Source: Pavona decussata (Eukaryota). From it: a stretch of 64,000 bases of DNA. Under the pieces are notes generated by a model. The model was not told where the DNA came from and did not search any database. It was given only the letters and a program-made list of their open reading frames with translations. This document shows positions 1-50,536 of the stretch, piece by piece. The translations under genes were made by a program, and so were the position numbers. The stretch is from assembly GCA_977016875.1 (NCBI GenBank), contig CDRNST010000282.1:806001-870000 (forward strand), written 5' to 3'. Numbering within the stretch: position 1 is the first letter of the stretch; every line of letters starts with the position of its first letter.

Positions 1-256
1 CTCAGAAAACAGTGCAATAGTAACATAATGAAAATAATACCAACGTGTGGCTTTGTAAAGAGAAACAAGCAAAGGAATTTGGCGTCCACTTCCTTTTTAT
101 ATGAAAATAATTAATTTGTCATGCTTTATTTCACATTAATACATGTACAGCCAAAATCGTTATTGCCCCAGCAATTAAGATGGATTAATTACAATGATAC
201 TATTTACCGTCAGTCATTGCCAATAAAATAGTCATTTTCGTGGCCTTGTTTTCCAG

Positions 257-523
257 TTCTATCGCAAATAACTGTCTACCTGACAAATGGCAATGAGACG
301 GTCCTGGAAGGTGGTAATGTGTCTTTGTACTGTGATATATCTGGGTTTCCTAAACCAACCATTACCTGGTCAAAAGATGGTGAACCTATTGATGAACCTG
401 TTCAGAACAGTCGCTGGTTAAACTTCATTTACATCAAAAGAGACGTGGCTGGGAATTACAGTTGCCATGCAAACAACACGTGTGGAAAAAGAGACTCTGA
501 AGTAAAAAGAATTGATGTGCAGT
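257..523 (+). CDS. Gene A Ig exon (I-set/C2-like)
   Basis: ttccag|...|gtaag; [21 protein letters not shown]...[13 protein letters not shown]. Confidence 0.92.
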
Positions 524-3500
524 GTAAGGACTATTCTTGTTAACACACGTTTCCATATCTCAAACTGACTTTGGACACCTTGTGAGATTTAAATAAATTA
601 GTGTTGCAGAACTTCATTTAGTAGGCAGAGAACTGAGTGAAGAAAGTGCCATTTAAGCAAGGAACTCAACAGCGTTTTAGGTTTAAGCACAGGGTTAGCT
701 TCATTGATTGTGATGTCCATGTAAACCTTAACAGCTAGTCCTTGGTCGTCGGTGTAATGTAAGGATAGCAGAAATGAAGCAAAGGACTCAAATTCAAGGC
801 GCACACTATTCTGATCTTTTCCCTTCTTTTAATCTCTTTTACTAAGTTTTACTTTATACAATTTCAAGTGAAAGACAAAAGTCAGTTGGGCATATGGAAA
901 CGAATGTTAACCGACCATTTTTCTCTAACTTGTCTTTCTAATTAAAATGTATCAAGCTTTGCTAAAATAGTGAAACAAAATGTGCAGTCTTCAACGTGAA
1001 ACGACTTGCTGGTAAGTTTCCGTGAAGGGAAGAACTCATTGTACTTTCTTTCTTGATCAGGAAGTTTCTTATTAATGAGTACTGTAGTATACGCCAGCAA
1101 AAATTGTATTTTTTTAAGATTACTACAGTATGTTACTAGGTTTTTAAGAACATTCAATGAATCCTTTGATAGACTACTGTATTGGGGAATTTTTGTGGGA
1201 GCAGGGATGGCGCAGTGGTGAGAGCACTCACCTCCCACCAATGTGACCCGGGTTCGATTCCCGGTCTTGGCACCATATGTGGATTGAGTTTGTTGTTGGT
1301 TCTCGTCCCTGCTCCAAGGGTTTTTCTCTGGTTTTCCTCCGTCCACAAAAACCAACATTTCCAAATTCCAATTCGACCTGGAAAAAATGGAGAGAAGACC
1401 CACTCGGTGGATTCCACTGAAATTCTATTTATTTATTTATTTATTTATTTAGTTATTTATTTATTTATTTTTGACTTTGTTGTATTAATTTTATTTTCTG
1501 AGAAAATAAGTGTTTCATTAAAGAATCAGGTTGTTTTCTTAGTAAGTATTGCTTTGGAAGCAATGTCTAAATCTAAGCGGGGAGAAAAAGTGGGCTGCAG
1601 GTGTCTCAGAGGGTAGCTTTTCATAATCTAGATTTGAAACTAATAACCGTTCACACGAATGCACGTGTATGTAACTCATCCAAAAACTCGTGATATGCTG
1701 TTCATTTTGTTTTTCATAACATGCCTTCTTTCTGTGCAGATAAACCTGAAAATGTTGCTTTAAATGTGAACATCTCAAATACCAAAGCGTGTGCAGACGT
1801 TGTAGTAAGTTTCACGTGTACAGCTAAAGCTGCCAACCCAGAACCAGATAATTATACTCTGTATGAAAATGGCCACGGTGTGGTTCAGAATATGCAAAGT
1901 CCAGGAGTGTGGATAAGACGATTGAACACTGTTGGTGAAGTAACCTACAGATGCGAGGCTAGGAATTCCATAGGAAAAGATAGCAGCAACAATACCACTT
2001 TCACTGTGGAAGGTGAGTTTCACTGCAAGTGTGATGGCTTTGCATGTTTATATTCATTTGCAACGTCAATGTAAGCTGATACAAACGCAGCTTGAGTGTT
2101 CAAAGAAGGGCACATTGTTTACTTAACATCAATTTTGCCATGTCTTCAGAGAAGCACATATTTGTAAGACGAGATTGAGTCTTTTACAGCATGTCTTATC
2201 TTAAAATGAGCTTTTAGATACATCCAGTGCCTGTTTAAATCAAGTCGTCCGATCGTGCTTTGTTTCAATACATACCCATTCTGTTAATGCCCTGACCAAC
2301 TGTAGAATGTGTAACGTTTGTCATTGCAAATAAAATGATTATTTTCTTGACCTTGTTTTTCCAGTTCCAGTAAACATAACAGTTGATCTGGTACACGGCA
2401 ACGAAACCCTCGTAGAAGGTGGTGATTTGTCTTTGTACTGCAGTGCACCTGGTTTTCCTGGAGTATCTGTAGCATGGTCAAAAGTTGGTGGCAAAACACC
2501 TGATGCGCGAGGTTCCTGGTTAAACTTCACTCGCATCACGAGAGTTGAAGCTGGTGATTACATTTGCCATGGAAACAACACCTGTGGTCGAACGAGCTCG
2601 TCAGTGAGAAGCACTGATGTCCAGTGTAGGGGAATTTCTTCTTTTTTTAATTAAAATTTAAGCTTTGCTAAAAGCATGTTAACACAATATAGATTGGAAC
2701 TGAGGTTTAATAGGATAAGTTCGTTTAACAGGGATTATTTGTCGCTGTTTTATGGAGATTTTTTTCCCTTAATCAACAGCTTTGAAATGTTATGCATCTG
2801 TAGCATACATGTACGACGTTCTTTAGCAAAATACACTCGTTATGTAGTAATTTTAACATTTATGGCACCCATTGTTTTACGTAGGTCATTTACCATGATG
2901 TCAGAAGATGGCAAATTCAAATTTTTTTGTGCACATGCAGTGTAGTCAACATCGGCCCCATACATAATTTTTATAGTTAAAAGCAAAAACAGCGGAAGGG
3001 ATGGATACAGCGTTAATTTTCAAATGCCAAAAAAAACTTTTATTCTGTCTATTAATTTCTCCATATTGTGCTTTCTTTTTTGAAGATGAACCTGAAAATG
3101 TTTCTTTAAATGTGAACATCATCGTCTCAAACAACCAAGTGTGTGCAGATGTTGTGGTGAATTTCACATGTACAGCTGAATCTGCCAACCCACCACCACA
3201 CACTTATACTCTGTTTGAAAATGGAAGCCCTGTGGTTCAGAATATGACAAGTCCAGGAGGGATAAGACGATTGACCACTACTGGCGAAGTAACCTACAGA
3301 TGCGAGGCTAGGAATTCCTTGGGATATGATAGTAGCAGCAATACTACTTTCAATGTCGGAGGTCAGCTTCACAACGAACGTTTCTCTGATTACTTCTCAA
3401 ATTCACCGTTACACTTGTTGCATGGAAGCTGGTGCTTACATGTATCTTGGGTCTCCAGAGAAGGGCATAGTTGACGTCTGAAATGTCTAGATCCCTCAAT

Positions 3501-6500
3501 CATCCTTAATGGGAGGCCTAAGTCCATTAAAAGGTTACCATAAACCGCTTTCCAGTTGTGTTCTGTTAGGTTTTTTATTCAATAGTTTTCTGGTTCCACA
3601 TATTACTTTTCCCCCTAGAGAAAAGAGGCATGTCGCAGGGGCTCAAGCTGTGCAGCCAACATTTAGCGAGGGAATACAGACAACTGTCATGTCTCCCAGC
3701 TTTTTAGGCGTTTTTTCTAGAGTATGTCTGTCATGTGTCTTTTTGGTAATAGCGTTAAGGGTGTGGAGTTGATTCCAAAACTCAATGGTGACTTTTAAAC
3801 TCAAAGTCAGTGTATCCATTTCATTTACTTTGCATTGTTTCGGGCGCTGTAAAGAAATTCCTGTTCTCATTCAGGAAATGTCAGGAGACAAACAGAAAGT
3901 GTTCATGCTGATCTGAGACCCTAACAATCCGCTTGGTCTTTAAGATGCATATAAAATTACTAAATCGTGCTTGGTCTAGCTTAGTGAATGGAAAAAAAAG
4001 GCTACCTTATTATAGGAAATTAACAATGCACTTTATTAACGCGATTTTACAAAATTCGCGTTAATTTAATGTATCTGAATTAATGTTGATGAAAATTTAA
4101 TGCACGCTATTTTACAACATTGTTATTTTAAAGCACCGTTTTTTTCATTACAAAACCTTACTAGTTCATGACTCCTCTATTGGCTCTTCAGAGTCACTAT
4201 CTTTTGAATTGATAGGGTCTAGTGAGGCTGCAAAACCAAATTTTCGGCTTTGACAAAACTTAGAAATATCCCTGCACTTGTCGTTTCGCAGTAAATAAAG
4301 CAAGATGCTTATCGAAAAGTTCGCGTTAATTTTAATGCATGTAAACCAAAGTTTAGAAAAATTCGCGTTAATTTAGGGTAACGTATATTTTCTTCGCCTT
4401 GTCAACGTGCATTGTTAATTTGCTATAACAAGGTAATTAAAAGTTTGTTGTGGAGCGTTTTCAGTGTCCTTGATGGCTCAGTTTGCCGACTGTGTCAATG
4501 CTGTCATCTAGTGTCTGTTGCTTCTTACAAAGATTTTGGCAGGCACGCAAGCAAAATGTAAAAATTCATTTTAAGCAACTGAACTGATGTAATTTGCGAT
4601 AGTGGAGAATCTGCTCGAACAAGCATCACCAAGTGGTCCTTAGTCCCACTCTGCCTCTCCCATTAATTCACCATAGAGAGAAGTGTCTGGTAATCCATAC
4701 AGATGGCAGACACTACCTTGCACTTATGTTTAAGACAGCTGGGAGCATGATGTCTTGAAAGTGTAAACGACTGTTATTCTAATGAGGGCCTCAATTAATT
4801 GTCCCTGTTGTGTTTCAAAGTTCCTGCAGTGACAATTGAGAACGACGCGATTGTCGTTAAGGAGGGAAGCAACGTGACGCTCTTTTGCAAATTCTCTGGT
4901 TTTCCATCTCCAAGTGTTTCCTGGGTTAGTAACAAAAGTGAGCTGATGAAAGTAGGTGACATATGGCGGATACCGAACATCAGAAAAAATTACACCGGAG
5001 AGTACAACTGCTCAGCAAGCAACGCGTGTGGCAACGACAGCAAAAGAACAGTTATTGATGTGCAATGTGAGTCACTGTTCATCCATTAAAATACATTGTA
5101 AAAATAGTGAGGTACAAATTGTAAAATGTGACGCTATTGTAATTAGTCATTTTTTGTTTAGCCTAAACATTGTGATAAAAAACCCAATAAACTAAAGTTA
5201 TGAAATAAACAACCCTAGAGTTGTGTACTTAACAGTTCAATAATCAAACTGCGATTCTTTTGTCTTTGGAGTTTATTATTTTTTGTCGTGATTACTTGAA
5301 ACACGCAGCCGTAGCATCCATTGAACAAAGCTCCTATTTGGTTTCTTTGCTTTTCTTTCCTTTGTTTACTTTTGGTAAGATTTTTGTTTATTTCAGTGGG
5401 GCTTACATGTTTGTGATGCACAGTAGTGGGTCTATCTATAACAAGATAGTTATGCAGTTAATGTATTCTAGCAAGGTGAAATCAATTTACTTTTAAAAAT
5501 ATTTTGTAATGCACACCTCGGAGCTCCGTTCAGTTACGGTCTATGTATGTAACATGGTTGCCATAGCGTTGTTTGTCTAAGCGTTTTTTTGTCAATGCAT
5601 TGTGACACTTAAAATAATTGCTCTTTACAGAGCTATTTTTGACCGCCTTTCTATTTGAATCCATGTTCATTTGACCAAGCACTTTTGAGAATACGCCATT
5701 GGAGGTTACTTGTAAATCCTTAGTAATCTTTAGGGAAATAAGTTGTTGGCATCTTTGTTTTCAGGGCTAAGATATCGTGGAGTATTTTTCTTGCATAAAG
5801 ATCAAACTCAGAGATAATGGATAACTTCTTAAAATAATTCAGACATCTGTTTTTACGATATGGTAATGGTCATAATGCCTGGCTTATTGAGATAAATGTG
5901 GTGGTCCATTTGGATTGTCATCCCAAAGAAGTCTATTCAAATAAGCATAGATTGCACCATCATTATCATCATCAGCGTTATCATAGGAATAACAAAAAAT
6001 GCAAGCAATAATCATGATAATTAACAAATGAATTTAACGTAATATTACATTTTTCTCACACCAAACAAACAAAAGGGACAAAAAACAACGACGATAGAAA
6101 CTGCAACACTACCGCTGCTATTACTTAATCACTACCATGACTAACTGATTCAAACCTAGGGTGAACTCCCCATTTATGTGTAATTAGGCCTACGCTCTAA
6201 CGATTCATATTTTGTCACTGGTTCTTTTCAGATCCTGCATTGGCCACACGTAGTGGTCGGAATTTCACTGTGTCCCTTGAAAGCTCTGCCTCTTTTGACT
6301 GCACTGTTGATGGAAACCCTGAACCTAACATTACATGGTACAAAGGAAGTACTGCTGGCGGAACTGTACTCTCCCTTGAGAAAGCCTTTATTTTTCTGCA
6401 GACCAAGTTAGATAACACGGGCTGTTATACCTGTTTTGCAAGTAACTTTTTGGGAACAGACACTATCACCGATTGCCTTAAAGTCGGTGAGTCATTTACA

Positions 6501-9500
6501 GTCCTGTGGAAGTAAATTTTCTTACAATTTACAGTTAACGTTAAATTTAGATGTTCTTTGATTTAGGATTTAGATGTCCGTTGTTTTCGGTTGCCCCCTT
6601 ATTAGCTATCATTTGATAGAAATCTCGAGCTCATAGTCTGATCGACATTGTTACAAATACATCGTGACTAATGTTTTCTAGTAATCATATAGCTTGTAGC
6701 TGCTAGATATTTGTATGTGTTTCCTTGTGCCGTTTGGGTTCAAACAAGATGCCTGGCATAAAGGATTTCTTTCACCCCCACTTGTTATTTACCACTAAGA
6801 GGGCATGCGTCTTTTGTACCACAGTTGCTGGTGGATCTGACTTTCTTTTAACTATGCTGCCGTTGAATGAAATCGAAACCTGTATTTTATTTTGCTGTGA
6901 TGATATGTTGGTTGAGAAGAGATTTTAAAGCATGTCACGACCAAAAAGACATCTAAATTTGCAGTTAGCTCGCCAAAACTGTGCAACTCATTGTTTTTAA
7001 ACATAACCGTTTTTTGCAAGGGTAGCTGACTAGCATCAATAATTATAGAAAAAAAAAACTGAAAAATAACAAGTAGTGTCCTGAGTATCTTACTCATTAC
7101 TGTCTCACTTTTTGTAGAACTGCCGCCCACACCTAGCACTGGCAAATCATCGGAACCTACTTCAAAAGGTAACCCTTTGCTAGAAATAATCTGTAACGTG
7201 ATCCAGTAAAGAAAAAGCCTCATTTACCCATTGATGTGCTTATCTACAGTCGAGGAAAAGTTTGACATTTGACCATGCTGTCAGTGTTAGAGTGCATTTT
7301 ACCGTTGTGGAGAGAAATAATTATTATAACAGTTTGTTAGTTTTGTAATCAGTTGCATCTGATTGTGAAAAATGGAACCAAAACGTGACTTAAGGACGGT
7401 GGCTGCTAATGCAAAGGTATTTTTGCTCAGTTTATGACTATGCGAGAAAAGAAGATCTTAGCAAAGGCTATTGAAATCTAACAATAAAATTGTGAGTTAT
7501 CACACATTTTTCAGAAATATTAAGCAACAATAATTAAAAAAGCTTTAAGAAACATAACAATGTATGGCATTTTCTCAGAATTGAATCTTGATTTTCTCTG
7601 AAAAATGCGTGGTTAGCCTCAATTCTTTTGGATTTCGATAACCCTAGCTAAGATCATTCTTTCTGCATAGTCATGAACTGCGCATCAATACATTTGAATT
7701 AATTTTCTCGGCCTGCAGCTTCCGGAGATGCACAGAACGTATGCGCAGTAGCAAACGGAAGCACCGTTCTTAAAACCTCCACTCTCAGAACAAATTGGCG
7801 TTAATTTGTTGCAAATTGTGCCTAAATTCCAATCCTTATTTTAAAAAGTAGAGATAGCGTTGAAGTGTTCTAAAAATTGGACTTAATCATAGCATATTGT
7901 CGCTTTTAAACTTTCTCCGCGCTGCCATTTTGGATTCCATGACGTCATATCGTTGCCCAATTATTCTGCACAAAAGAGCATCTGCTTCCTGTCAACCGTA
8001 GGGCGCCATAAAATCCAAAATGGTGACGAGTGGGAAATTGAAACGCAAAAATGGGCGATAGTCATTCGATTACTAAAATGCGATGGCCACGTTTTCAATT
8101 TTTTTTCAAACGTAGACACTATTTCCAAAGTTGAAAAGTTTAAGTTTGCGTTAACTGAAGTCTTTTCAAACTAAAGTCTCTCGTTTTGTGTTGTGCAGTT
8201 TTTAGTGAAAAAGATTCCCTTGGCACACACAAGTGGAGAGTTTTTCGCCAATCATGGGGCTCAATTCTGTGACCACTGTAACACCTGGATAGTTTGAATT
8301 ACCCAACATTTATGCTTAAACTTTTGTTTTTCCATTAGCTTCTGATAGCTCTCTTAGGGTCACGCTTAAAGTCACAAATTACAATTGTGGAAATTTACCA
8401 AGGGGAAAACTTATTCAAACGGTATGAATGTATTTAACTTCTTTTCTAAAGGTTGCTATAAGCAGTTGCAAAAAGGTTAAGACGCTTTTTTTTCTTCTTT
8501 TTCTTCTTCTTTTTTTTTTTTTTTTTTATTCAAAATTGTCATTCTGAATAAGAAATACACTTTTAAACGAAAGTGATAAGATTTTAACCAGCTCTGGTCC
8601 CCCGGCTCCCTTAAAGTGTTAATACCTGTTACTTTAAACATGAAATTCGAAATTGGAAAAACATTGATTAGAAGAAGGGGGTAGGGGGAGGGGGCGGCCT
8701 GACTTGATTGATGAATAATTCAATTCAATCCACTTCAATTTTATTCACACTTATTCGAATGGAATACAATATATTTTATAGTAAAAAAAAATTGTCCAAT
8801 TGAATATTGGACAAGTTCTATCTCCGATATGTAGTAAACCGAACAAGCTTGGTCAATGACGCTGCTCATGTGGCCCGTCGGATTGCATAATTCAATTATC
8901 TGGACTGCTTACTTGGTAGAATAGTAATAAAGGCTCTTACTTCCTTGATTTTACTTCCTTTAGGCTCAGGACATTGTTGAAGCTCAAGATTGTAAATTAG
9001 AAAGGTACTACCACCAGCAAATTTTGCGTATTTTTAACAAATGTAAACATTGGAATATTTGCAATCAAATTGCGCCAAATGTTTATCTGGTTTGACAAGG
9101 GGCTAGATTCTAAAGAAACTGTGGTTCTTCGCCGGTGGGTATCAACTCAGTTTATCAGTAGAGTTAGTAAGGTAATTTAATCGCCGTGACGAGATTCTAA
9201 TGCTGACGTTTTGAGCGTTAGCCCTTCGTCATACATGTAGTTTGGTTTAGTGCGTGATTCCCGCGTTACCAACACACACCATAGTTAGGGTGCTGTTGCA
9301 AGAACCAATCTTTTGTGCAACTCGCAAGGCATCGCCGTTGCGAAGCAAGTTGCAGACAAAAGTAAACTTGTAACACCTCCGCCTCGCTACTCAGTTTTCT
9401 CGCAACGTTGCGAGATGAGTTCCAACGTAACATGTCCTCTGCAACTTGCAGCGCATTGCTCTCGTAAACATTGCGTTGCACAAAAAATTGCCTTGTGAAA

Positions 9501-12416
9501 CAGCGCCTTAAGGATGACTCTTTACCGGACTTTCGGTCAGAAGATCGAAGGGTTGATGGTTCCAGGTTACTTGGAACCATCTACTGTTGTCTCGTTAGAG
9601 AGAAACTTTCCTCTACGTCCTGTTGGAATACTGTTGAGGGTAACCCCACGGTAGACTAGCATCCCATCCAGGGGGAGTAGCAATACCCTTAGTTGGTTCA
9701 TGCTACAGAAACCGGATTCCACTAAGGCTTGAAGTGCAACTTTGTCTTATTAGGCACTTTAAGCAACCTCGACGGCTACGCCTACCAAAACGTCACTCGA
9801 AAGTATAAGTCTACTCTTCTTGAACCACTTCGCGATTATCCCAATTCATTCAACTTGCACAACGCGGCTGAACTATCCAGGTACAGAATTGGTAGGAGCC
9901 GCATTCTAGTTTAGACAGAGTATGTGCTCACATTCTCGACAAAACCTTGGAATTTGGTCATTTCAAGTTGTTTTACCGAGGATGGCGAGGAAATATACCA
10001 AAATTTAAAACACACGTGCATGGTCGTTGTTTTTCTCGTATTAGGCTGATTTAGCAACAGAATGGGAACGTCATTTGAGGACGCAAAAGCGCGCGGAATA
10101 GTCTGGATGCGAGTCTATTTCGACTATCTTATGGGTATTCTTGATGCGTGCAACTACAACGCCGCAAAACTAAAGCTGTAATGACGAAAACAATCACTCT
10201 GCACGTGCATGTTAACTTTTGGTACACTTCTTTGCTGTCCGCTGTAAAACAACAACGTGAAATGACCAAATTCTAGGTTTTGTGATGAACTCGAACACAC
10301 GACAGTGAATTTTCAATTCTCTTTCTTTAGTTGAGTTGGACCACACAACTACCAATTTGGTTGGTTTTATTTGGTAGTTCACTATTTCTGTAGAAGTTGA
10401 ACTAGTTGAAGTAATCTCGAAGTAGCACAAATATAAAGTAAAGTTATATTTTCAAGTTACCTTTTCGTTGGCGTTGCAGCCGTCGAGGCTTAAGTTCCGT
10501 AGTAATACACACCCCTTCTCCAGAGAATGTGAAATTATGAAGCCGCTAAACTTCTGCGCAATATCGACAGCCATTGGTGTAAAACATTAGCTTGTAATAG
10601 GTATTTCTAATAGGTATCTTGTGACAATTAACTGGTCCATTAGTACAATGCAGCAATTTAGCAGTCTGTTTCTAATTTTAGGTGCAAACCAGGCAGTGCG
10701 ATCATTGATCTCGTTTTGCGATTCAATCGAAGTGTAAGTGAAAGCAAGGTAATATCTGCTCTGAAGACTGCTGCGCAACAAGACAAATTTGGCATCTTTA
10801 AAGTGGACCCCGAATCCACTAAGATCACCGAGCCTGAACCTACAACCAGAGGTACAGTAACACTGCTGTTTGTTTCTCTTTGGATAAGGAAAATGGCTTC
10901 ACTCCCAAAAGCGCCTGCAATTAAAAAATCTTAGTGCAAAGTGAGTTTCGCAGGATACCGAAAAACAAAATGTATCTGTTTTGTTGGCTCAGCTATGTTA
11001 GGGCAATCTTGTTTGCTGCTTTGTTTGGGGTGACTTTAACTGACGTTTCGACAACCTGAGCGGAAGTCATCTTCAGAGTCAAGTGAACTGTGGAACGTCA
11101 GTAGATGGTATATATGTCTCTGGTTGTTAACGTGACAGGTCAATGAAGTCAAGATGTTATTGTTCATTTGTCACTAAGCCGTGATGTTATTGGCTATGAA
11201 GACTGTAAAAAGTGATTGGTACGTTTCGATCTGTCTTTTGTTAGTCAAAAGTCCATGTGTCCTTTTTTAGTAAACTGTCTATTGTTGGTCTGTTTCGTTG
11301 ATGTTGTCAATGAGTCGTTTGTATGGTGCAGGTAGTTGTAGGCAACGGTTGAGTGGTGTTTGTTCTAAGTTAGTAAACCAGCTGTCCAGAATGAGTCGTT
11401 GATAGTAATTTGTACTGTAGGTAATGCACTTGGCAGAGTCCCAGTCGATTCTGTGGTTCGTTTGTAAATGGTGCTCAGCAATGTGATTGTTGATATCACC
11501 ATTTCTAGTTGCTCGTTTGTGTTCAGTCAGTCGTACGTTTAAATTTCTGCAGGTCTTCACCAATATAAGTGGCCTGGCAGTCACAGCATTTGATCTTGTA
11601 AACTGCTCTCTGTCTGCGGTTCGTTTCGTCTTTCTCCTGTACGTTCGTCAGCAGTTGTCGTGAAGTGGTAATTAATTAATTAATTAATTAATTAATTAAT
11701 TGAACCAAAACCTGTATTTTTTTTTTTTTTTGCTATGATGATAGTTTGGTTGAAAAGAGATTTCAAGCATGCCACGGCTAAAAAGACATCTAAATTTGCA
11801 GTTAGCATGCCAAACTTGTGCTACTCAATGTTTTTAAACTTAACCGTTTTTATCAAGGGTAGCAGACTAGCATCAATGATCATAGAAAAAAAAATTGAAA
11901 AAATAATAAGTAGTGTCCAAAGTATCTTATTGTTTATTGTCTCACTTTTCATAGAACTGCTGCCCACACCTAGCACTGGCGAATCATCGGAACCTACTTC
12001 AAAAGGTAACCATTTGCTAGAAGTAATCTGTAACGTGATCCAATAAANNNNNNNNNNNNNNNNNNNNNNNNNNNNNNNNNNNNNNNNNNNNNNNNNNNNN
12101 NNNNNNNNNNNNNNNNNNNNNNNNNNNNNNNNNNNNNNNNNNNNNNNNNNNNNNNNNNNNNNNNNNNNNNNNNNNNNNNNGTTTTATTCCTTTTTTTAAG
12201 ATTTTTAACTTTGTGTATATGATTGATTTTTTTAATAAGAATAGCATAGTAACTTTATCAGAAAAAAAAAGAAACGGCTTGAAAGTTCTCTTTTTTATCG
12301 AAATAAATTGTAAATAGTTTTTTAATAGTTCTTATTTCTACTTTTAACTTGTGAATAGCAATTTGTCTGAAATATGGTAATAAAGAGTTCTCATTATTTA
12401 AAAAATTATTATTATA

Positions 12417-36476: not shown

Positions 36477-39152
36477 CCCATTTTTTCAGGCTTTCTTTTC
36501 TTTTCTTTTTGGTAATTAGCTATTTGGTAATTATCGGCAATAAGGTTTTTCCAACCATGCTTGTCTAGATTTTGATGAGAAATTTTAAGTTTTTCACTAC
36601 TAAAGATTAAATTTCTACACCATTTTAACACCTTTTTACTCATTCCGACTCCTCTCAAGTCAATAAGAATGGTTTGTATAGTTTTCTGCACTATTAGAGA
36701 ATAAAGAACATTCACGATAAGATCGCCAATACAAGATTATAAGACGTCATTATTGCACTTTGCAAACTTCAGAGAACATCTCAGGAACACAAAAAGAAAA
36801 AACCCAGACTTAGTTTAAAAAAAGTTACAAAGTTAAAAAATCGAGTTCACATCTATTATTTGTTACCTATTGTGAAGATTTCGTAGAGAACAACTCCATA
36901 ACTCCATCTATAAGAAAGTGGAAATAAAGAATGATTTCCTGTTAGTTAATACATATAATGACAATATGTTTATTCAGATTTCCTGAACCGTTTCGACTTT
37001 CTGTGGAAGTTAATGGGTAAAATCAGCTGTTAAACAACTCTGCTACAGTTATACTTACACATCACTCTTGGTGGTGTATGTTCCATACAACAACGATTCA
37101 TAAGCTGTCCACTTGACTGGTAGCCGACCCTAATTGTTGAAAGGTACATGGATTATTTTAGGTTTATTAACAAGTACAATCAGATTAATGTAACACTTTT
37201 TCATTATGTTTACATGATTTTTCGATTTTTCTAATCTCGTTATTGCTTTGAGAGTTTATATATGTCATTTGGAAACGGGGAAATAATGTCTCTTTTCTCA
37301 AAGAATGCAATACCTCTTCAAATTAGCGAACAATATCACAAATTTTTTAGGACTTTTCTTAGTGTATTACCCGCGTTTTCCTTTCAAAGATGTTTTCTTG
37401 CTGCACATCCCTGGCCATTCCAAAGTCTGTCACTTTACACGTTTCTCCTTCTCCAACCAATACATTACGAGCAGCAAGGTCTCGGTGGATGATCTGTAAC
37501 GAAACACTCATTAGTTCCTAATGGCTCGAGTACGCCAGGCCATCCTGATGCAACTGGTTTTTACTGTTTTTTTTTCTGTGGTTTTGTTGGAAAGTTGTTG
37601 TAATATCAAGAGGTCCACTAAGGGCATTTTCATTGCTTATGTGCCCCTTATGGCTCGTGTACGCCGGGACATCCTCGTGCAACTGACGGCTAACCTGTTT
37701 ATAAGACTTGATTTTATGGTGCCCCTTCCAATCTGGCTTTATTCATTAATGTATCTGCTAATGCATCATTACAATAGAGACTTCCCACTGTTTGTTTAAA
37801 ATGGATGAGATGAAGTCGGAATACTTTTATTCACCTTTCTGGAAGACAGATAACTCATCCCATCTGCGATTTGCCAAGCAAACTTCATCAGCTGCTCTGA
37901 TGTCAGGGTAGTCTGGGGTTTGATATCCGGGTCTTTGTAATAAGTGTCATTCAATCCACGGCTCTTCCTCAGGTAACCCAGTAGATCCCCATACGGGACA
38001 TACTCGATCAACACCATCAAAGGCTCTGAATTAAAAGAAGAGACAACTCAAAGAGTTGCGCTTTGCCAAAAAGTCGGGGGCAATTTATGTTATGTAATCA
38101 ATCCGTTGCTTCTATATAGCATACATCTCAACAGATAGTACTTCTGGAATGAAAATTGAATGCGCTGTTTTCATCATTAATCAAACTCTGGGATCGTGTC
38201 GATGGATCTTTCCAAGGCATTTGATACCTTGCCACACGAACTGCTGGGGGCCAAGCTCAAGTCCTATGGAGCTGACGGCAAAACTACCGATCTAGTTCAT
38301 GACTACCTTGCAAATCGACGTATTTTCATAATAAACTGCTATCAAACTGCTATCATCATAAACTCTGGAACCGTGTTAAGTACTCTGGGATGGAAATACC
38401 TTCCATACACGAAATAACTTCTTGCAATGGAAATCCTGTGTAAGTCGCAAATGGCTGTCTATCAGAAAAATTAAAAAAAACTACCACTGAGGAACTTTTA
38501 AACGTGATTATGTAGGATAAAACTGCTTACCAGATTCAGTGACACATCCCAGCAGTTTGATTACGTGATTATGAGGTTTTAGCGTCTTCATCAATTGAAG
38601 TTCTGATAGTAAGTCCTTCTTGTCTGTTTCGGGGGTGTTTTCTAAAAGCAAGCAATGAGGCAAATTATAACTGAGAACAGAGCGAGTTGGCAAGGCATTA
38701 TCCAGTTAACAAAAGAAAAGGTCTCCATTGGAAACAATAAATAGCATTAAGTATGGATGAAACACATCTCGTTTACGTCCATGAAACAAACAATTTTTTT
38801 GCCAATACAAGAAAACAACTCAAACCAGTTTCAAAAAAGTGTTACCTTTCAGCATTTTAATGGCAACAGTCGTGTGTCCGGACCTGAACGGAAGTTCTAT
38901 TGCCGTTCCCTTAGCAACCTGACCAAAAGCGCCTTTACCAATAACCTTTTCCACAGTCACGTTGTTTTTTGCTACTTCCCAGGAGCGTGTCTGTAGATTA
39001 AGGGGGGCGTATTCGGCAACTGGAGAAGGACTCTGTGATTGACCGTTGCGGTTTTGTAGGTCCATGTATGTAGCACCGGACATTGTTAGCTGTTGTGTGG
39101 AGCTACTTTGACCAAGATGACTGGCATTAACGTCGTCCATTTCTACTTCATT
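33472..39152 (-). CDS. Gene B tyrosine kinase domain and C-tail (9 exons)
   Basis: [15 protein letters not shown], alphaC Glu (LLSELQLM), [32 protein letters not shown]...RP; ends [15 protein letters not shown]. Confidence 0.95.
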
Positions 39153-42100
39153 CTGAAAAAGGAAACATGCTTTGTCTCTTCGTAATGTAAGTTTAAAATT
39201 AATAGACTTTATTTCAGAAAATGATTTCATACATAGGGTGAAAGGCGAAATAGAAGAACTAAGGAAAGACTTACGTCATAGAATCCTTTATCACCAGGAG
39301 GCACCTCATATTGTCTAAGGGTAGAACAAAGGTGTTTGTGAGGAAGTTAATTCTTATTTAATTCAAGACACTACTTCTTGTTTTTTTTTTTTTTTTCATT
39401 AGAAGCTAAGGCGCGCGGCGGCTTTGAACCTGAATAACTTTTTGGTGGGGCACCAACAGTCCTTCTCCCCCTTCCTCCCCCACCCCCCGTTCCCCAGAAG
39501 ACAGAACAAAAAAAGCCCGGTCTAGATAGGATTAATTTACCTTCAATAATTAGCATGACCATAAAGTCTTCCACTTTCCGTTTAACACAGAGTAAGTGAA
39601 AAAAATTGTTTAGCATCAGCAGAGGTCTCCGAGAGCCCATTTACTCAGATACAAGTGAGGAAATCAGACTTTGCTTGTAATTTTGAAAACATAATAGCTT
39701 TCCCTTTGCATTCAAAATACTAAAATTTATTGATTTGAAAATATTAATGATTTGCTGTATTCTTTCGATTAAATCCGTACCTTTTCTTTTCTTCAGTTCC
39801 TGAAAAAAGGATAAAAGTCATCGTTCAGTAAAATAAATACAAGATTCTTTGCCAGAAAGATATTTCACTGAATAATTTACCTTTCTTGCGCTGCCAAATT
39901 ATGATTACAAGGAGAAGAATGACGATCAAGGCAAGAACTCCGATGATCGCTAGCAAAATGACGTCATTGCTGGAGCGTTTACATTCTGTAAGCAAAAGAA
40001 ATAAGAAAGCATTTGAAACACGAACAAAATTTATTGAAACCTTCTCTTGGTAAGAAATTTGTCACCCCGGAACATTCCCCAACGTTACCTCACTGCCACA
40101 GCGGAAAAAACCGCTTTGTTCTTAAAATAGTAAGTAATTGACTTAACTCAAAAACAAAAAGATATCTTGAGAGTTGCTGGAGCATTATGGTTTTTTACGA
40201 AAAGCAATTTACATCCTATTTCAGGCGGTTTTGATGGAGAGCTGAAGTAGTGTATGTGGAGGTTTCAAGTGGCTGTGTGTTGGATTTAATAAAATAGTCT
40301 GCGTGTCGAGCTTTGTGCCGAGAAAGGAGGATAGCTGGTGCATGAGACGAAAACTGGTGCGTGAGACGAAAGGAGCGCGTAAGTATGAGAAGAAATTAAA
40401 TCTGCTAGTTGATTATACTGTTGCTGAGTCCATTTTTGAAACTTAAGTTTTTACAACTCTATGAAACCGTGTAGCTCCTTTCGCATAAAGGAAATACCTC
40501 CTTACAATAAGGCTGTTGTTACTGTTGTTAAGGTTTGCAAGTTGAAACATTCACTACCTACTGAAAATGGTTTTACTCAATTTACTCACTATAACGTAAT
40601 CATCATAATCTCTTGTTCTACAAAGAAATTGTAGTGTCATGAATACTCCATTTATCATGGCGACCAACTACACATAATGAATTTTATTCAGCTGTTCAAA
40701 CGTTAGCATAAGCAAAAGTAAATGTGACACAAACCCTTTACTATACCTTGTGTGCCTCCTGTGCTGGTAGGTGATGAGGAAGTGGTTGAGCACGGAGCCG
40801 ACTTAATTGAATTGGGATCCACATTAAACGATCCGAATTCGTTTTGTTCTGCAGCAGTCTTAAGAGTAGATATCACATTGCTTTCAGCTACGTTTTGATT
40901 GAATCGCAGAACAAGATCAACGATCACACTACCACACCTAACAGATAAAAATTGAGAGATTGCTCAGCTGCACCTGTTTAAAAAGCTTGCAACAAGAAAA
41001 TTAAAAGGTGAGGAAAATCATACCGAACTGCGACTCCAACACCTTTCAGGCCGAAAGATTCTAGTGTCTTCTCAACCTACAAAGATAAAAATAATAAATC
41101 GGGCCACGAAACCAGCTTCTATCTTCATCAAGAATAACTGTCTCTTGTTACGTCTAATCCCTCCTTATGAACTCAGAAAATCATAATGGTCACTTATTTT
41201 TTGCGCACGTGTAAGTTAAATATAGGAGTCCAACCTACTCAAGTTGTAAAAGGGAGCTTCAGGGATTTTTACCTTCTCTTTGGCATGTAATACCAGTTTA
41301 GCTTTGTTAACAATCGATTTAAGACAACACAAAATATTTAATACCTCTGTGCGAAACTCATCTTCTGGAAAATTATTACAGTCTTTGTTGGTTATGGTTA
41401 AAGTCACCACTCGAACGAACTCCACAGATTCTACGGAAAGAGCAAGAATTTGTCAACATAACGTATACATGTTGAACGTAATGATTTGCTAACACCAAAG
41501 TAAGCCATTTTCAATTTTGTGGGAAATATTGGCAGCCATTATTATTATATTATTATTTTATCATCAGGCTTCACTTCCCGCGCTGAAGGACACGGAGTTA
41601 CTTGGAGAAATTAACACTTGTTGAAAGAGAATCGCTTGTGCTGAAGGACGCGGAGGTACTTGGAGAAACACTTGTTGAAAGAGAAGCGTCCTATGAATAC
41701 TTCATAGCGCAAACCGGATTTAATGAATAATTAATTTCCTTTGAATCGATTTAATATATCTTTAAATCTGAGACATACTAAGCTCATTTAAAGGTTAGGT
41801 CAGAATTATTAAACAAGGACCAAAAGCGGATAGGAAAAGGGAAGGAGGAGGGGGGAAAAATGAGATGTTCATACGGTGGATGTTACTGAAAGAATGACCC
41901 CCGTGGTAGCAAGGTCACAAGGAGTTAACCTCTGACAATAGATAGGGGGTTCATTTCATTGAGGAGGCGCGGTGGTGTTGTGGTTATCGCGTCGGACTTT
42001 CGATCGGACGGTCGGAGGATCTGAGGGTCGTTGGTTCGAGGCCAGGTTGGTCTCTTCATTGCTGTGTGGTTTCCTTAGACAAGAAACTTTGCTCCACATT

Positions 42101-45100
42101 GTCTCTCTTCACCCAGGTGTATAAATGGGTACCGGCGACATACTACTAGGGGTAACCCTGCGATGGACTGGCATCCCATCAAGGGGGGAGTAGCAATACT
42201 CCTAGTTGCTTCATGCTACAGAAACCGGGCTAAGCTCCGGCCGTGTGGGCCACTTAGGCTCTTGTGCGACTTTGCCTACCTTACCTCATTTCATTGAAAT
42301 GCGTAACCTTCAGCCCTTGTCTTGTCTGTCGTGGGAAGCGGCGTGGCCTAGTGGTTAGGGGAGCCGGACGGGTAATCTTGAGGCCCCAGGTTCAAGTCCC
42401 GCTCCAAGGCCACGCTTTGTAAATAGCCAACTGATTTGCCTCCCACCAGTTGGGATTTTTAACCATGTTATTTTCAGTTTGCATATTTATTTCACTGGTT
42501 TATACTGTCCCCAATTAGCGCTGCAGCGCTAAAAACTTCGACACTTAAATAAATAAAGTCATTTATTTTTTTCTGAAGCATCTCCGTGGGCCGGAATCTC
42601 AAATCCTCGAATCTGATTGGCTAATCGCGCGCTCGTAACCGGTCCAGCTTTTTACGATACGGACCACGGTCCGGATTTTGAAGTTGAACAAGACAGGCAA
42701 TTAAGCAAAATTCAAGATTTTATTCACTCACTTCGCCCTGGTAACACTAAAAAAAAGACAACTTACGATCTGAACATTTGGCGAAGATACTGTTCCTCAG
42801 TTGGAGAGACAAGAACCTTGGAAAACGTTCCTCCTAACGAGCTCAACATTCTGCTGTGCAGATTTTTCATGGACGTCCGTAAAAAAGATGGCGGAGGATG
42901 GCGGAGGATGGCGGAGTGTACGAGCCAGGTACACTTGCATCGCTCCAGAGAAGTATTCAGCGCTAGCTCATTTGTATCTAAAGTTCGCCAGCCATCGTCC
43001 TGAAGAAATGAAGAGACCCGAGACGCCTTTCTTCCTGTCTTCCTGACAATAAACCACAAAAGAAAGCCTGCAGATCCTGTGTGGTACAGTCGAGCTCCTC
43101 TCGGAAAAAACAAGATCGGAGAATTTTTGACGAAGGCTGAGAAGAATGCAGAACTGCCTGAAAATGTAACCAACCATTCTGTGCCAGAAACCTGCATTTC
43201 AAGGCTGATGGATGCAGAAATTCATGTTTATTATGTAGCTCAGCGGAGTGGACATAAGAATACAAAAAGCTTAGATTCCTACAAAACTGCTTCCGACGAC
43301 CACCAGCGCAAGATGTCCTTGCTACTGAGCAGCGAAACGAAATCTCCCATCTCTTCAAGCGATGCACCGCTTAATCAAGCAGTCAAAGCCTTGCAGCACC
43401 CATTCAAGCCGAGAGAAGACAAGCAAGCTTCTTCAGACGAGGATCCCTTGGTTTTTTTTTTTTTCGCTGGTTCGAACATCAGTAAAATTGAAGACTGCAC
43501 GTTCAATTTCTCTTTCAATACAGCGCCTTGAAGCAGTGGTGAAAGCTCGGCTCGGTCAAAGCCGCGAAAACGCCACATTATCATCTCAGATGACTCAGAC
43601 TCAGATTAACTTGAACTTGCTTTTGGAAAGTTAGTTTTCACAAATCCAGGGACGTTTTAAACATGTAACGAACCGTTAAGAAAAGTAAACTGCGTCGTGT
43701 TTGAGTTTTCATTCATAATTTTTATCATTCGATCGATATTTTTAGACCTTTTGGACATGCGTGTCATCATTTGCAGCGTGTCAACATTCATCCACTTTTG
43801 ACGTTTGACAGATGATTGTCATTTCAATGACTCTTAAATGGCTTTTTCTTTTTTTACATGATGATTTGCGAGTGAAAATAAAATTAAACTTCCTACAAAC
43901 ATGCCACTTAAATTGATGCCCTATTTACATTTGTTTTATAGGATTTTGTTACCACTTTCCTCCTCCAGCCTTAAACTTACACTCTTACAAACGTCCCGGC
44001 GAAAAAAAAGCAAACAAACAGAAAAAAAATAAATAAGTTATTTACCGGTCTAGGTCGGTCCGTATGGGAAAAAACTGTGCCCTTGGTCTTGAGTACGGCC
44101 CTCGGCCTTCGGCCTCAGGCCGTACTCAAGACCTCGGGCACAGTTTTTTCCCATACGGACCTCCCGCCCGGTAAATAACATATATTTTTTTTTTTTTTTT
44201 GTTTTTAAACCTGGCGAGCTTTGTTCGATTACATAACATTATACGAAGCCCGTTGGCGACAAATTATTTAAACAGTTGAGAAAATACCGAGAGAAAAACA
44301 TAAAAATTCTATTCGTCAGCAAATATTTCCTAACCGATTGTATTATTAGAAATAAAGCAATTCAGCGTCCTTTAAGTGGGTCTTAAAAATGCATAATGAT
44401 TATTTCATTTCGTTCTGATGAGAAAAGCTCGGGAATGATTATTGCTTTCCTGGCTCACTTCTTTAAAGGATCCATTTTAAATGCGTCTTGAGACGTCATA
44501 TAGCCTCTTTGCTCGCGTTAACACTATTCAGCCAGCTTGGGCTTTTTATAAGTTCCTGACCTCTTCGTAACTTGTAAAATCTATGACAATGGAAGAACAT
44601 TTTTCTTTGGCGTCCACAAAATAAGATGATGATGTTACTAATTACTGACTGATTACGTTATTGATTCTCCACAGCCGCCATCTTCTTCCATAATTATTTT
44701 TTGGATCACTGCTACATGCAGTTCTCTAAAACCCCAGAAAAATATCATATTAGCTCAGAAATAATCAAAACCAATAAAGAAACCTGATACAACAAACACT
44801 TTCACAATAGAGGTAATCAAATTTAAATATCAAATTTTCGAAGAACACCGCCTTGCCGTGAACAATATACCAAATTCATAAAGTTTGGTTGTGCTTGCTT
44901 TAATATTATAAAGTTATGCATTAAATTCACTGCGCCATCGCCCCCCCCCCCCCCCCCTCTCCCCCCTGCGACAAGGCTGAATAGGGTTAAAATGAAATTT
45001 CTGATGCTCATCATCGTTCCAGCTTTGGATGCAAAGAAGAGTGTGTCATGAGACCCCAAAGTTGCTGGAAACGGGCACCGACAAATCTTTTGCGTCATCT

Positions 45101-48100
45101 AAAAAGGGGGAACATACCCAAGTAAAACGCGGCAGCAAGTGGTCTGAAAACTTGAAAAAACAGTGAATTTCTTTGATTTTACTTTTGCAAGAATATGTAA
45201 CATACCAACCAAGAGGCACTGAACAGATGTTCTTTTGTGCAGAATAATTGGGCAAGCATATGACGTCGAGGAACCCAAAATGGCAGCGCGCAGAAAGTTT
45301 AAAAGCGACAATTGGCTATGATAAAATCCAATTTTTAGAACACTTAAACGTTATCTCTACTTTTTAAAATAATCTTTGAAATTTAGGCACAATTTCCAAC
45401 AAAATTAACGCCAATTTGCTCTGAGAATGGAGGTTCCCTTTAAGAACTGTGCCTCCGTTTGCTACTGTGCATACGTTTTTTGCATCTCCGGAAGCTCCGA
45501 GAAAAGGACGGTGCCTACTAATATAAATGTATTTATGCGCAATTTATGACTATGCAAAAAGAATGATCTTAGCTAGGATTGTCGAAGTCCAAACGAATTG
45601 TGGGTAATCACGCATTTTTCAGAGATAATCAAGATTCAATTCCGAGAAAATGCCATACATTGTTATGTTTCTTAAAGCTTTTAAAATTATTGTTGCTTAA
45701 TATCTCTGAAAAATGTGTGATAACCCACAATTTTATTGTTAAATTTCAATAGCCTTTGCTAAGATCTTCTTTTCTTGCGGCCATAAACTGAGAAAAAATA
45801 CCTTTGCATAAGGAGGCACCATCCTTAAGTCACACTTTGGTTCCTAGTTTTCACAATTAGATACAAATGATTACAAAACTAACAAACTGTTATTATTTCT
45901 CTTCATAACGGTAAAACGCACTCTAACACTGACAGCATGGCCCAATGTCAACCTTATCCTCGACTGTGGACAAGCACATCAATGCACCTTACACTTTTTT
46001 GTGAAAGGTGCAGCACAATTTTTTATTAATTTATTCATTTATTTTTTATTTTTATGGGTAAATGAGGCCTTTTCTTAACTGGATCACGTTACAGATAATT
46101 TCTAGCAAATAGTTACCTTTTGAAGTAGGTTCCGATGGTTTGCCAGTGCTAGCTGTGGGCGGCAGTCCTACGAAAAGTGAGACAATAAAGAATAAGATAC
46201 TTAGGACACTGCTTTTTTAATTTTTCTTTTTCTTTTTTTTCCTCTGATCATTGATGCTAATCTGCTACCCTTGATAAAAACGGTTAAGTTTAATAACAAC
46301 GAGTTGCACAGGTTTGGGTTGCTAACCGCATCTCTTCTCAACCAAAATATCACAGCAAAAAAAATTACAGGTTTCGATTTAATTCAGCAAGAGCCCAGTT
46401 AAAAGAAAGCCAGATTTCACCAGCAAATATGTACAGGCCCGCAAATGATTCCGGCCTGCAAATGATCCTCGGACCGGAAATGATCCCCAAATTGAACTGC
46501 AAATGATCCCCGGACGGGAAATGATCCCCGATCACCTCACCATAAATATTGAATGGAATGGACTCGAATTTGGACAGTGGATTTAAATTTTATACACTTT
46601 GTTTTTTTTTCCTTAATAACACCAGTCGTTATATTAAGCTACATGCATATACATTTCAAAACTTTAAAAATTATAATGTAGCAGCTCAGTGTAACAGAAC
46701 AATTTACTTTATATAAACTGGAACATACATGCCAGTTGTTCTCTCAGGGGTGTAGCCTGCGAACGTAGACGTGTTTCCGGCTGTCGAGATTTTCTCCGCC
46801 GGAATTTTTTCGACGTCCGGAAATACGTCTACGTTCGCAGGCTATCAGGTGTGTCGCCTGAGAACAAAAAGTAATTGGGTGCGTCGCCTTTGCTTCGTGA
46901 GCCGGCTAATTAACTCTGATATATTTAGTAGAAATTTCTCCAGAGGGAGATTTTGAACTCTGCCGTTCTTATCTCGGGTGTATCGCTAGTAAAGGACGAG
47001 CAATGGGATGTGTTGCCTTTGCTTTGCTGTGTTTAATACTCGCTGCACATCGACGATAACTTTTATTTACTCCAGATTTTTCGAAGGTTTTTTGACTGAA
47101 CCGGAAATAATCGACTGCATGCAGTGAGTGAATGTTGATTGCTGTGAACTTTTTACAATGGGATGGGTGAGACTCGTATTGCACCGAAAATGTGATTTTA
47201 AACTATCAACAGCACTCCCGTAAACGATATGCCCCCTGTAGTGATTGAGAAAAAATATGGATGGCAAAATCGGTTGCTAAGGCTTGCGGCTTGCCATGGA
47301 GGGGGACAATGGTCTTCTGTAGGTCTATGCCGACGACAGTGTGTTTTGTAAAAAAAAAATAGAAAAAAAAAAGACTGGGAGTCCAACTAGCAGCAAAACG
47401 AAAACGAAAGACAAAATCAACATATTACACGATAACGTATTGGACGACCGAGGCTTAAACGTTATGCTTAAGACTAAGATCCGATTAAGAACAAAGGCGA
47501 CGGTAGTGGGTGAGATTTGACTGCCATCTGAAGCGCATTGACCGATTCTCCTTCCTTTTTCGAAAAAAAAAAATGAAATAAAATTAAACTTGCGAAAATC
47601 TTAACTGACCCGCTCTTTATCAAATTTGGAAGAGTTTTGTACAATTCGTGCACATTTTAGGCATTGTATGTATGTTACAGTTTATAGGTAAATTGTTCTG
47701 TTGTATTGTGCTGCTATATTATAACTTTTAAAGTTGAGAAATTTGCATGCAGATAGCTTAAATATAACGAGTGGTGTTATTAAAAAAAAAAGGAATTCCC
47801 TTAAGTTTAAATCCACTGTCCAAATTTGAGTCCGTTCCATTTTATATTTATGGTAAGGCGATCGGGAATCATTTGCGGTCCAATATGGGGATCATTTCCC
47901 GTCCGGGAATCATTTGAGGTTCAATTTGGAGATCATTTCCGGTCCAGGGATCATTTGCGGGCCGGGATCATTTGCGGGCCTGTACAGCTATAAAAGACGC
48001 ATACTCTTTGGGGGGTGAATAACAAGTGAGGGTGAAAGTGACCAGGGCAGACCTCCTTTATGCCAGGCATCTTGTCTGAACCCAAACGGTACGAGAAAAC

Positions 48101-50461: not shown

Positions 50462-50536
<75 letters not shown>

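Follow-up and report, generated by a model that had tools for sequence, protein, structure and literature searches.

How two neighboring receptor genes came to be nearly alike in their outer part and only distantly related below it is the question raised by the window analyzed here, a stretch of 64 000 nucleotides (nt) of the stony coral Pavona decussata (G000:C282:806001-870000) that contains three N gaps. Gene A is predicted to encode a receptor with multiple immunoglobulin (Ig) domains, a short stalk, SEA-like exons, its own transmembrane (TM) segment and a tail with motifs resembling the immunoreceptor tyrosine-based inhibitory and switch motifs (ITIM and ITSM). Gene B, a predicted receptor tyrosine kinase (RTK), lies tail to tail with A on the minus strand, with Ig exons running from 58880 to 48300. 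A preliminary description of the locus, made from the sequence alone, ascribed the sharp step in identity between the two genes to a recent inverted duplication or gene conversion that had re-homogenized the ligand-binding part of two old paralogs. The present analysis leads to a different answer, which is considered likely: an Ig and stalk cassette was copied from the lineage of A into an RTK gene, with a non-homologous join at its 3' end, before the coral species compared here split.

The step itself is sharp. In a blastn comparison of the window with itself, A 1-7984 aligned with B 58218-45224 at 78-87% identity, including the introns and a palindromic miniature inverted-repeat transposable element (MITE). 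Within this cassette, intron identity is 78-90%, and exon identity is about 90% at the nucleotide and 80-87% at the amino-acid level; the homology reaches upstream of the window to about -1687. In a three-way MAFFT alignment read in windows of 100 columns, identity between A and B was 0.79-0.95 from A 6100 to about 7967 and then fell to 0.39-0.45, the level of random sequence. Both methods agree with the break that had been placed at about 7985 in A and 45225 in B, the last aligned bases being 7984 and 45224, and a copy in another species (locus L054) shifts the end in A to 7987. Past the break, blastn with a word size of 7 recovered in gene orientation only the core of the second SEA-like exon (SEA2; 10692-10823 against 40933-40802, 79.7% over 133 nt) and in the opposite orientation one repeat fragment (about 9534-9760 against 42009-42273). 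The SEA peptides that had been quoted lie at A 8341-8388 and 10707-10766 and at B 41428-41378 and 40918-40859; their exons are still homologous, as had been stated, and more diverged, with about 71% nucleotide identity in SEA2 and about 50% in the first SEA-like exon (SEA1).

Synonymous divergence gives the same division. Exons were searched singly against the genome, and substitution counts were pooled over exons without joining them. By the Nei-Gojobori method, the Ig and stalk exons of A and B differ by a synonymous divergence (dS) of 0.135 and a nonsynonymous divergence (dN) of 0.103 over 364 codons, and a second count gave a dS of 0.116 over 448 codons. For SEA1 and SEA2 together, the proportion of synonymous differences (pS) is 0.586, the dS about 1.14 and the dN 0.364 over 82 codons. 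The dS is thus approximately eightfold higher downstream (Fisher's exact test on the synonymous counts, p = 1e-12), and the uniform synonymous divergence that would have spoken against a step was not found. Two ages of homology are present: a young copy of the ectodomain overlies an old paralogy. Upstream of the break A and B are young relatives, and downstream of it old paralogs.

The nature of the break can be read from the relatives of B. An exon-by-exon search of the genome gave five RTK paralogs, namely B, D (C282, about 953-968 kb), E (about 697-718 kb), F (about 656-676 kb) and G (contig C217), which have a common 3' body of last Ig exon, SEA1, a 53-nt middle exon, SEA2, TM and kinase exons. 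The last Ig exon of E aligns with B 48685-48334 (78.7%), and the bases of E that adjoin it align with B 45222-44381 (81.6%); the latter region of E (C282:705081-704278) begins inside its last Ig exon. Compared with E, B is thus longer by 3.1 kb between these points, made up of the stretch that it shares with A (A 6478-7984) and a later transposon with terminal inverted repeats (TIR). In gene orientation, B 45300-45224 matches A 7909-7984, and the homology between A and B ends within 2 nt of the point at which B resumes its homology to E. The following 17 nt of B (45222-45206) are equal to the end of the last Ig exon of E, and they are followed by a GTATGT splice donor (45205-45200) and an E-like intron. 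B thus has two ends of a last Ig exon, an A-like end at about 48334-48300 and an orphan end at the seam, and the 17-nt stretch is best read as a relic of the original last Ig exon of B. Downstream of the seam, B is colinear with E, F and G, introns included. Since the five-way alignment leaves at most about 3 nt of microhomology at the junction, the sequences point to an illegitimate joining rather than to the product of homologous conversion.

Gene D agrees with this arrangement on either side of the seam: its sequence resembles A as far as A 7631, resembles B and E from the position matching B 45061 onward, and lacks the 527 nt that span the seam. The simplest reading is a deletion after the seam had formed. 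In D (G000:C282:953000-968000; loci L033-L036), which lies about 110 kb away, the last Ig exon and the stalk are of the A type (84-92% amino-acid identity to A), and the 3' body is 88-97% identical to that of B; the block of Ig exons found in A from about -9567 to 5676 is missing. By these similarities, D is taken to be a third copy, in the form of a chimeric RTK.

Against a duplication of the whole gene at a single age, in which the downstream part merely looks older through introns replaced by transposons and fast-evolving SEA exons, stand not only the eightfold difference in dS but also the 407-nt SEA1-SEA2 intron of B, which has no match anywhere in the 2.26-kb intron of A, the unrelated TM and cytoplasmic exons of the two genes and the colinearity of B with E, F and G. 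The downstream introns are indeed rich in repeats, as seen in the depth table, SEA1 of A diverges faster between species than its own flanking intron, and A has a long branch in the SEA2 tree; nevertheless, the seam and the dS already refute such a duplication, which is regarded as highly improbable.

The seam also bears on the re-homogenization that had been proposed initially, in which old paralogs had their Ig exons made alike within the species by gene conversion or a recent inverted duplication, with concerted evolution still in progress. The two ages of homology are real, and A and B are inverted and lie within 40 kb of each other, as such a process would suggest. However, the 3' boundary is a non-homologous join of an A-type intron to a 17-nt end of an RTK Ig exon, which leaves an exon end duplicated. 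The copy also brought the stalk exon. Within this genome, tblastn found the stalk exon only in A, B and D, and the kinase paralogs E, F and G, in which the last Ig exon is followed directly by SEA1, are without it, so that there was nothing in them to homogenize.

Direction and timing were addressed with other coral assemblies. With the last Ig exon alone as the query, and then the contigs encoding it, three cassette loci (L053, L054 and L055) were obtained from one assembly (ENA ERZ26692669), and the stalk exon is also present in cassette copies of other species (tblastn). L053 and L055 contain the full cassette, the stalk, SEA1, a SEA2 that is 82-86% identical to that of A and an A-type TM exon, which in L053 follows SEA2 after 2.3 kb. 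Both are ungapped and colinear with A over the break, with SEA1, SEA2 and introns among the matching parts (A 7777-7951, 7993-8025, 8180-8464, 8827-9897 and 10608-11025, at 71-90%). L054, by contrast, is A-like up to 7987 and then continues with an E-like exon relic and intron (89% to B 45347-44970 and 88% to E). These comparisons place the seam in B and not in A. Since A-type genes are continuous and RTK-type genes chimeric in both assemblies, the donor was the ITIM/ITSM-type lineage and the recipient an RTK ancestor of B and D, with the event preceding the species split.

The opposite direction, in which the cassette is native to the kinase lineage of B and D and was copied onto an older gene with an ITIM tail, would make A the chimera. 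In its last Ig exon A does nest with B and D inside the RTK family (80-87% amino-acid identity to B and D versus 56-68% to E, F and G), and it is the odd one out in the SEA exons. SEA2 of B is 92% identical in amino acids to that of D, 87% to that of E, 73% to those of F and G and 65% to that of A, which itself is 56-65% identical to the RTK paralogs; SEA1 of the RTKs is 87-96% identical to that of B, and SEA1 of A is too diverged for detection by tblastn. In the SEA2 tree, B, D, E, F and G form one clade (support 88/95), with the A-type genes outside. The same family comparisons also speak for B and D as the recombinants. The opposite direction is therefore very unlikely, given that the A-B homology stops within 2 nt of the return of B to E homology, that A-type genes run unbroken across this point in two species and that E, F and G pass from the last Ig exon straight to SEA1 without a stalk.

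The age of the copy can be given relative to the species split. The cassette dS between A and the A-type genes of ERZ26692669 is 0.135-0.148, and that between A and an A-type locus of a third assembly (L052) is 0.117; the A-B values of 0.116-0.135 match this range. Two trees of the cassette region (1.2 and 2.2 kb, introns included) are star-like, with weak support (72/66) for grouping by gene. Because of these similar dS values and star-like trees, the copying is placed shortly before these lineages split. The recent date given in the preliminary description does not hold, as the seam is also present in L054, and the grouping of Ig regions by species that had been put forward as a check was not recovered. 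A by-species clade of the cassettes, although absent from the trees, is not rejected by the approximately unbiased (AU) test (p-AU 0.31), and the identity between B and D, which ranges from 80% to 97% along the gene, hints at later exchange in the family; from this variation, exchange within the RTK group is possible. No positive sign of species-wise homogenization since the copying was seen in the cassette trees or dS values. With the identical non-homologous join found in the assembly of another species, and with an A-B dS equal to that between A-type genes of different assemblies, recent re-homogenization is at odds with the step itself and is considered unlikely.

A mis-join of the assembly at 7984 or 45224 would also produce a step. 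The window has three N gaps, a near-identical 4.9-kb unit in B has gaps on its flanks, and a second, odd copy of the stalk region borders a gap; neither break point, however, is close to one. Furthermore, run X18, which behaves like DNA in that it covers every bin, yielded a short-read contig across A 7728-8482 with 0 differences, and the continuous and chimeric configurations both occur on ungapped contigs of another, independent assembly. An artefact of this kind is practically negligible, in agreement with the preliminary argument from copy-specific insertions, which are real and postdate the copying: the TIR element of B is missing from L054, as is A 1197-1471 from L053.

The preferred history, that of a cassette copied from the A-type lineage into an RTK gene, would thus run as follows. 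The cassette, comprising several Ig exons and the short stalk exon (about 10 kb in A and 14 kb in B), would have been copied from the lineage of A, a multi-Ig gene with SEA-like exons, its own TM exon and an ITIM/ITSM-like tail. A non-homologous break would have joined the copy to the last 17 nt of the last Ig exon of the recipient, and this relic, its splice donor and the native intron would remain in B from 45222 downward. B and D would therefore be chimeras with an A-type outer part on a native RTK body of SEA-like, TM and kinase exons. Independent transposon insertions and a fast, near-neutral change of the Ig exons would have followed; the dN/dS of the cassette is 0.76-0.88. The sequences show the seam, the direction of transfer, the two ages and the recurrence of the seam in another assembly; a repair or replication mechanism presumably lies behind the join.

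Several results weigh against this history or against parts of it. The 5' boundary of the copied tract was sought and not fixed: the homology of A to all copies ends at -1687 owing to a change in A itself, and the far-upstream exons of B are a mosaic in which exons are nearer to A and one intron is nearer to E. A one-junction fusion and a two-junction replacement are both possible. The star-like cassette trees may leave room for later exchange among the copies. In the SEA2 tree, a grouping of the A-type genes with B and D was not rejected (p-AU 0.198, 132 columns), and a look-up downstream of L054 met a dispersed repeat and did not reach kinase exons. The SEA-like part of A presents a further difficulty. 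Since SEA1 of A ends in phase 0 and SEA2 begins in phase 2, a further exon between them, like the 53-nt middle exon of the RTKs, is needed for the frame, and none was found by tblastn with the RTK exon, by enumeration of AG..GT intervals of fitting phase or by conservation between species. Because the frame needs this exon, the SEA-like exons of A are placed in mature mRNA only tentatively; RNA or RNA-like runs yielded only short contigs (last Ig exon, stalk and part of SEA2) with zero splice junctions.

Two candidates for the middle exon of A were rejected. The best-looking, at 10331-10389, has a 5-nt indel in the other species and lies within a repeat, and that at 9541-9593 lies within a transposon fragment. 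The assignment of these exons to the SEA type is tentative, being suggested by their GS[VA]I[VI] motif (GSVIV in B, D, E, F and G; GSAII or GSAIV in A-type genes) and by their location, after the last Ig or stalk exon and before the TM exon. A motif of the type G-S-V-V-V at the turn between strands beta2 and beta3 marks autoproteolysis of SEA domains. When the SEA-like exons were compared singly with Pfam by hmmscan at E values up to 1, no SEA match was obtained. SEA1 of A evolves very fast, with its splice sites and a TN.NC motif retained in the other species. SEA2 of A has an amino-acid identity of 82-86% and a dN/dS of 0.2-0.4 (over about 50 codons) to A-type genes of the other species, which weakly suggests constraint.

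The features of the two genes are collected in Table 1.

Table 1. Positions of the features of genes A and B within the window, with the evidence for each.
Feature	Position	Strand	Evidence and remarks
Gene A, cassette part	1..7987	+	blastn; Pfam Ig_3/I-set; exon ends from splice sites
Gene A, Ig exons (six within the window)	~257-523, 1740-2012, 2365-2625, ~3000-3400, ~4820-5072, 6232-6486	+	Pfam Ig_3/I-set
Gene A, stalk exon	7118..7168	+	51 nt, phase 1 to 1; Pro/Thr/Ser-rich linker; tblastn
Palindromic MITE-like element in the shared tract	7392..7700	.	Matches in both orientations, 68-92%; B counterpart 45504-45810
Point in A equivalent to the seam, sequence continuous	7984..7988	+	Colinearity with L053 and L055
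Gene A, SEA-like exon 1	8339..8421	+	83 nt, phase 1 to 0
Gene A, SEA-like exon 2	10682..10851	+	170 nt, phase 2 to 1; GSAII motif
Second partial copy of the stalk region (intron and stalk exon)	11708..12047	+	Adjoins assembly gap 12048-12180
Gene A, transmembrane exon	19124..19258	+	Phase 1; unrelated to the TM exon of the kinase genes
Gene A, cytoplasmic tail exon	20461..20808	+	ITIM-like VYADL and ITSM-like TQYADI motifs
Gene B, A-like cassette copy	45224..59157	-	blastn
TIR element, later insertion in B	46430-47986	.	Absent from L054
Seam in B	45200..45224	-	Pairwise and five-way alignment
Gene B, native kinase-gene intron	44381..45222	-	Colinear with E (81.6%) and D (92%)
Gene B, SEA-like exon 1	41345..41430	-	86 nt; amino-acid identity 96% to D, 89% to E, 87-88% to F/G
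Gene B, middle SEA-like exon	41024..41076	-	53 nt, phase 0 to 2; conserved in B, D, E, F and G; not in the preliminary description; no counterpart found in A
Gene B, SEA-like exon 2	40747..40937	-	191 nt; GSVIV motif
Gene B, transmembrane and predicted tyrosine-kinase exons	37362..40061	-	HRDLAARN motif; TM exon within 40061-39828

The classification of B as a receptor tyrosine kinase is predicted from a TM segment followed by a tyrosine-kinase catalytic domain. Its kinase exons contain GKGAFGQV and HRDLAARN and are 84-98% conserved across the five paralogs, and the first kinase exon alone matches PF07714 at an E value of 1.6e-4 (below the whole-protein cut-off). Further upstream, at B 50567-58880, a 4.9-kb unit of four Ig exons is repeated, the two copies being about 99% identical (tree branch lengths 0.004-0.007) and each preceding an N gap (48692-48831 and 55255-55440); either a very recent tandem duplication or two haplotypes assembled in tandem would account for it.

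In gene A, splicing into the TM exon is possible in frame from the stalk exon or from SEA2. Both arrangements have parallels among related proteins: in P0003, a protein model from another coral, the stalk passes directly to the TM segment, and P0006 contains SEA2, TM and tail. In the search of representative proteins with the tail of A, P0001 matched at 74%, P0003, P0006 and P0010 were longer models and most matches were exon-sized fragments. The longer models were rejected as strict orthologs of A, P0003 having no SEA part and P0006 having SEA2, TM and tail. The fifth Ig exon of A (4799-5086) is matched in neither B nor D, and the closest paralog within the genome reaches only 50% identity; it was found at 81-87% identity in L053, L054 (B-type) and L055 and at 82% in L052. 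As the B-type locus L054 of the other assembly has this exon, it has been lost from B or lies inside the gap at 48692-48831. The second copy of the stalk region, 0.9 kb downstream of SEA2 of A, is 89% identical to the first copy of A, 94% to L053 and 91% to D; it could represent the border of another A-type gene or result from faulty scaffolding. A long run of open frames (13400-18900), which resembles a large inserted transposon, fills much of the 8 kb that separates SEA2 from the TM exon. Two further open frames with Ig domains on the plus strand (25587-26690), situated where the 3' ends of A and B face each other, probably belong to another gene of the Ig superfamily.

Two loci in other corals extend the comparison. 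L052 (ENA ERZ25073805) has Ig5, Ig6, stalk, TM and tail in common with A (79-86% in nucleotides) and, between stalk and TM, a SEA2-like exon (8746-8877) of a different subfamily that groups with the C282 and C100 paralogs L007-L017; owing to this different type of SEA2 exon, it was unusable for comparison across the break. Its homology to A ends inside the MITE, at about 7524-7655, and together with the seam this makes it seem that the same intron was broken more than once. In a more distant coral (NCBI GCA_029204205.1; L051), an RTK-type TM exon (33504-33641) lies on the opposite strand about 9.6 kb downstream of a gene with SEA2, TM and an ITIM/ITSM-like tail (13891-23953), and the tail-to-tail neighborhood of A-type and RTK genes may therefore be old.

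In known systems, chimeric genes arise by partial segmental duplication or exon shuffling, with microhomology junctions formed via non-homologous end joining or template switching during replication. The present locus resembles these in the in-frame fusion of a multi-exon block with phase 1-1 exons, in its 0-3 nt of microhomology and in the truncated relic of a recipient exon; the donor side is continuous in A, L053 and L055 and the recipient side in E (in D further on). It differs from the usual case in that donor and recipient are distant members of one family (Ig, SEA-like and TM), and for this reason the seam can be mistaken for gene conversion. A sharp step in identity between paralogs, a signature of gene conversion, can accordingly be produced by a single illegitimate fusion.

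Among cnidarians, the Alr family of Hydractinia reportedly consists of Ig-superfamily genes with motifs like ITIMs and immunoreceptor tyrosine-based activation motifs (ITAMs). By description, the genes studied here are similar to it as clustered, fast-evolving receptors with tyrosine motifs in their tails, and differ from it in their I-set/Ig_3-type domains, SEA-like exons and kinase partners. A search of titles and abstracts found no description of this coral gene pair.

Pairs of receptors with one ectodomain and two kinds of tail are a hallmark of vertebrate innate immunity and are commonly interpreted as the legacy of an arms race with pathogens or self-ligands. In the coral pair, the two tails carry different sequence motifs, VYADL and TQYADI in A and, in B, a TM segment and kinase exons with HRDLAARN. 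From the shared ectodomain and these motifs, it may be supposed that A and the B/D pair bind the same ligand with inhibitory and kinase outputs, respectively. It is proposed tentatively, as a possibility still open to considerable doubt, that stony corals possess a true paired system, in which an ITIM/ITSM receptor and one or more RTKs obtained the same multi-Ig ectodomain by a single cassette transfer and have kept it in at least two species. If so, it would be an invertebrate, kinase-coupled counterpart of the inhibitory and activating receptor pairs of vertebrates. The locus is an exact molecular record, its scar still readable, of how such a pair can arise outside vertebrates, with the direction of transfer and a relative date before the species split, and B, D and the copy in the other species are natural chimeras for testing shared ligand binding.

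Literature context for paired immune receptors with shared ectodomains is found in three articles (PMC5701461, PMC2832619, PMC12447643). As in Siglec-5/14, Siglec-11/16, CEACAM1/3 and CD300A/C, the genes are neighbors with nearly the same Ig ectodomain and tails of different signaling potential, and the similarity ends abruptly near the membrane-proximal region. The parallel with Siglec-5/14 drawn in the preliminary description therefore stands for the outcome, a shared ectodomain with different tails, and fails for the process. In the vertebrate pairs, repeated homologous conversion keeps the ectodomains grouped by species, and the activating partner is coupled to ITAMs or adaptors; in the coral genes, an RTK is the partner, and a single old copying event, closed by one illegitimate join, would have been followed by the drifting apart of the copies.

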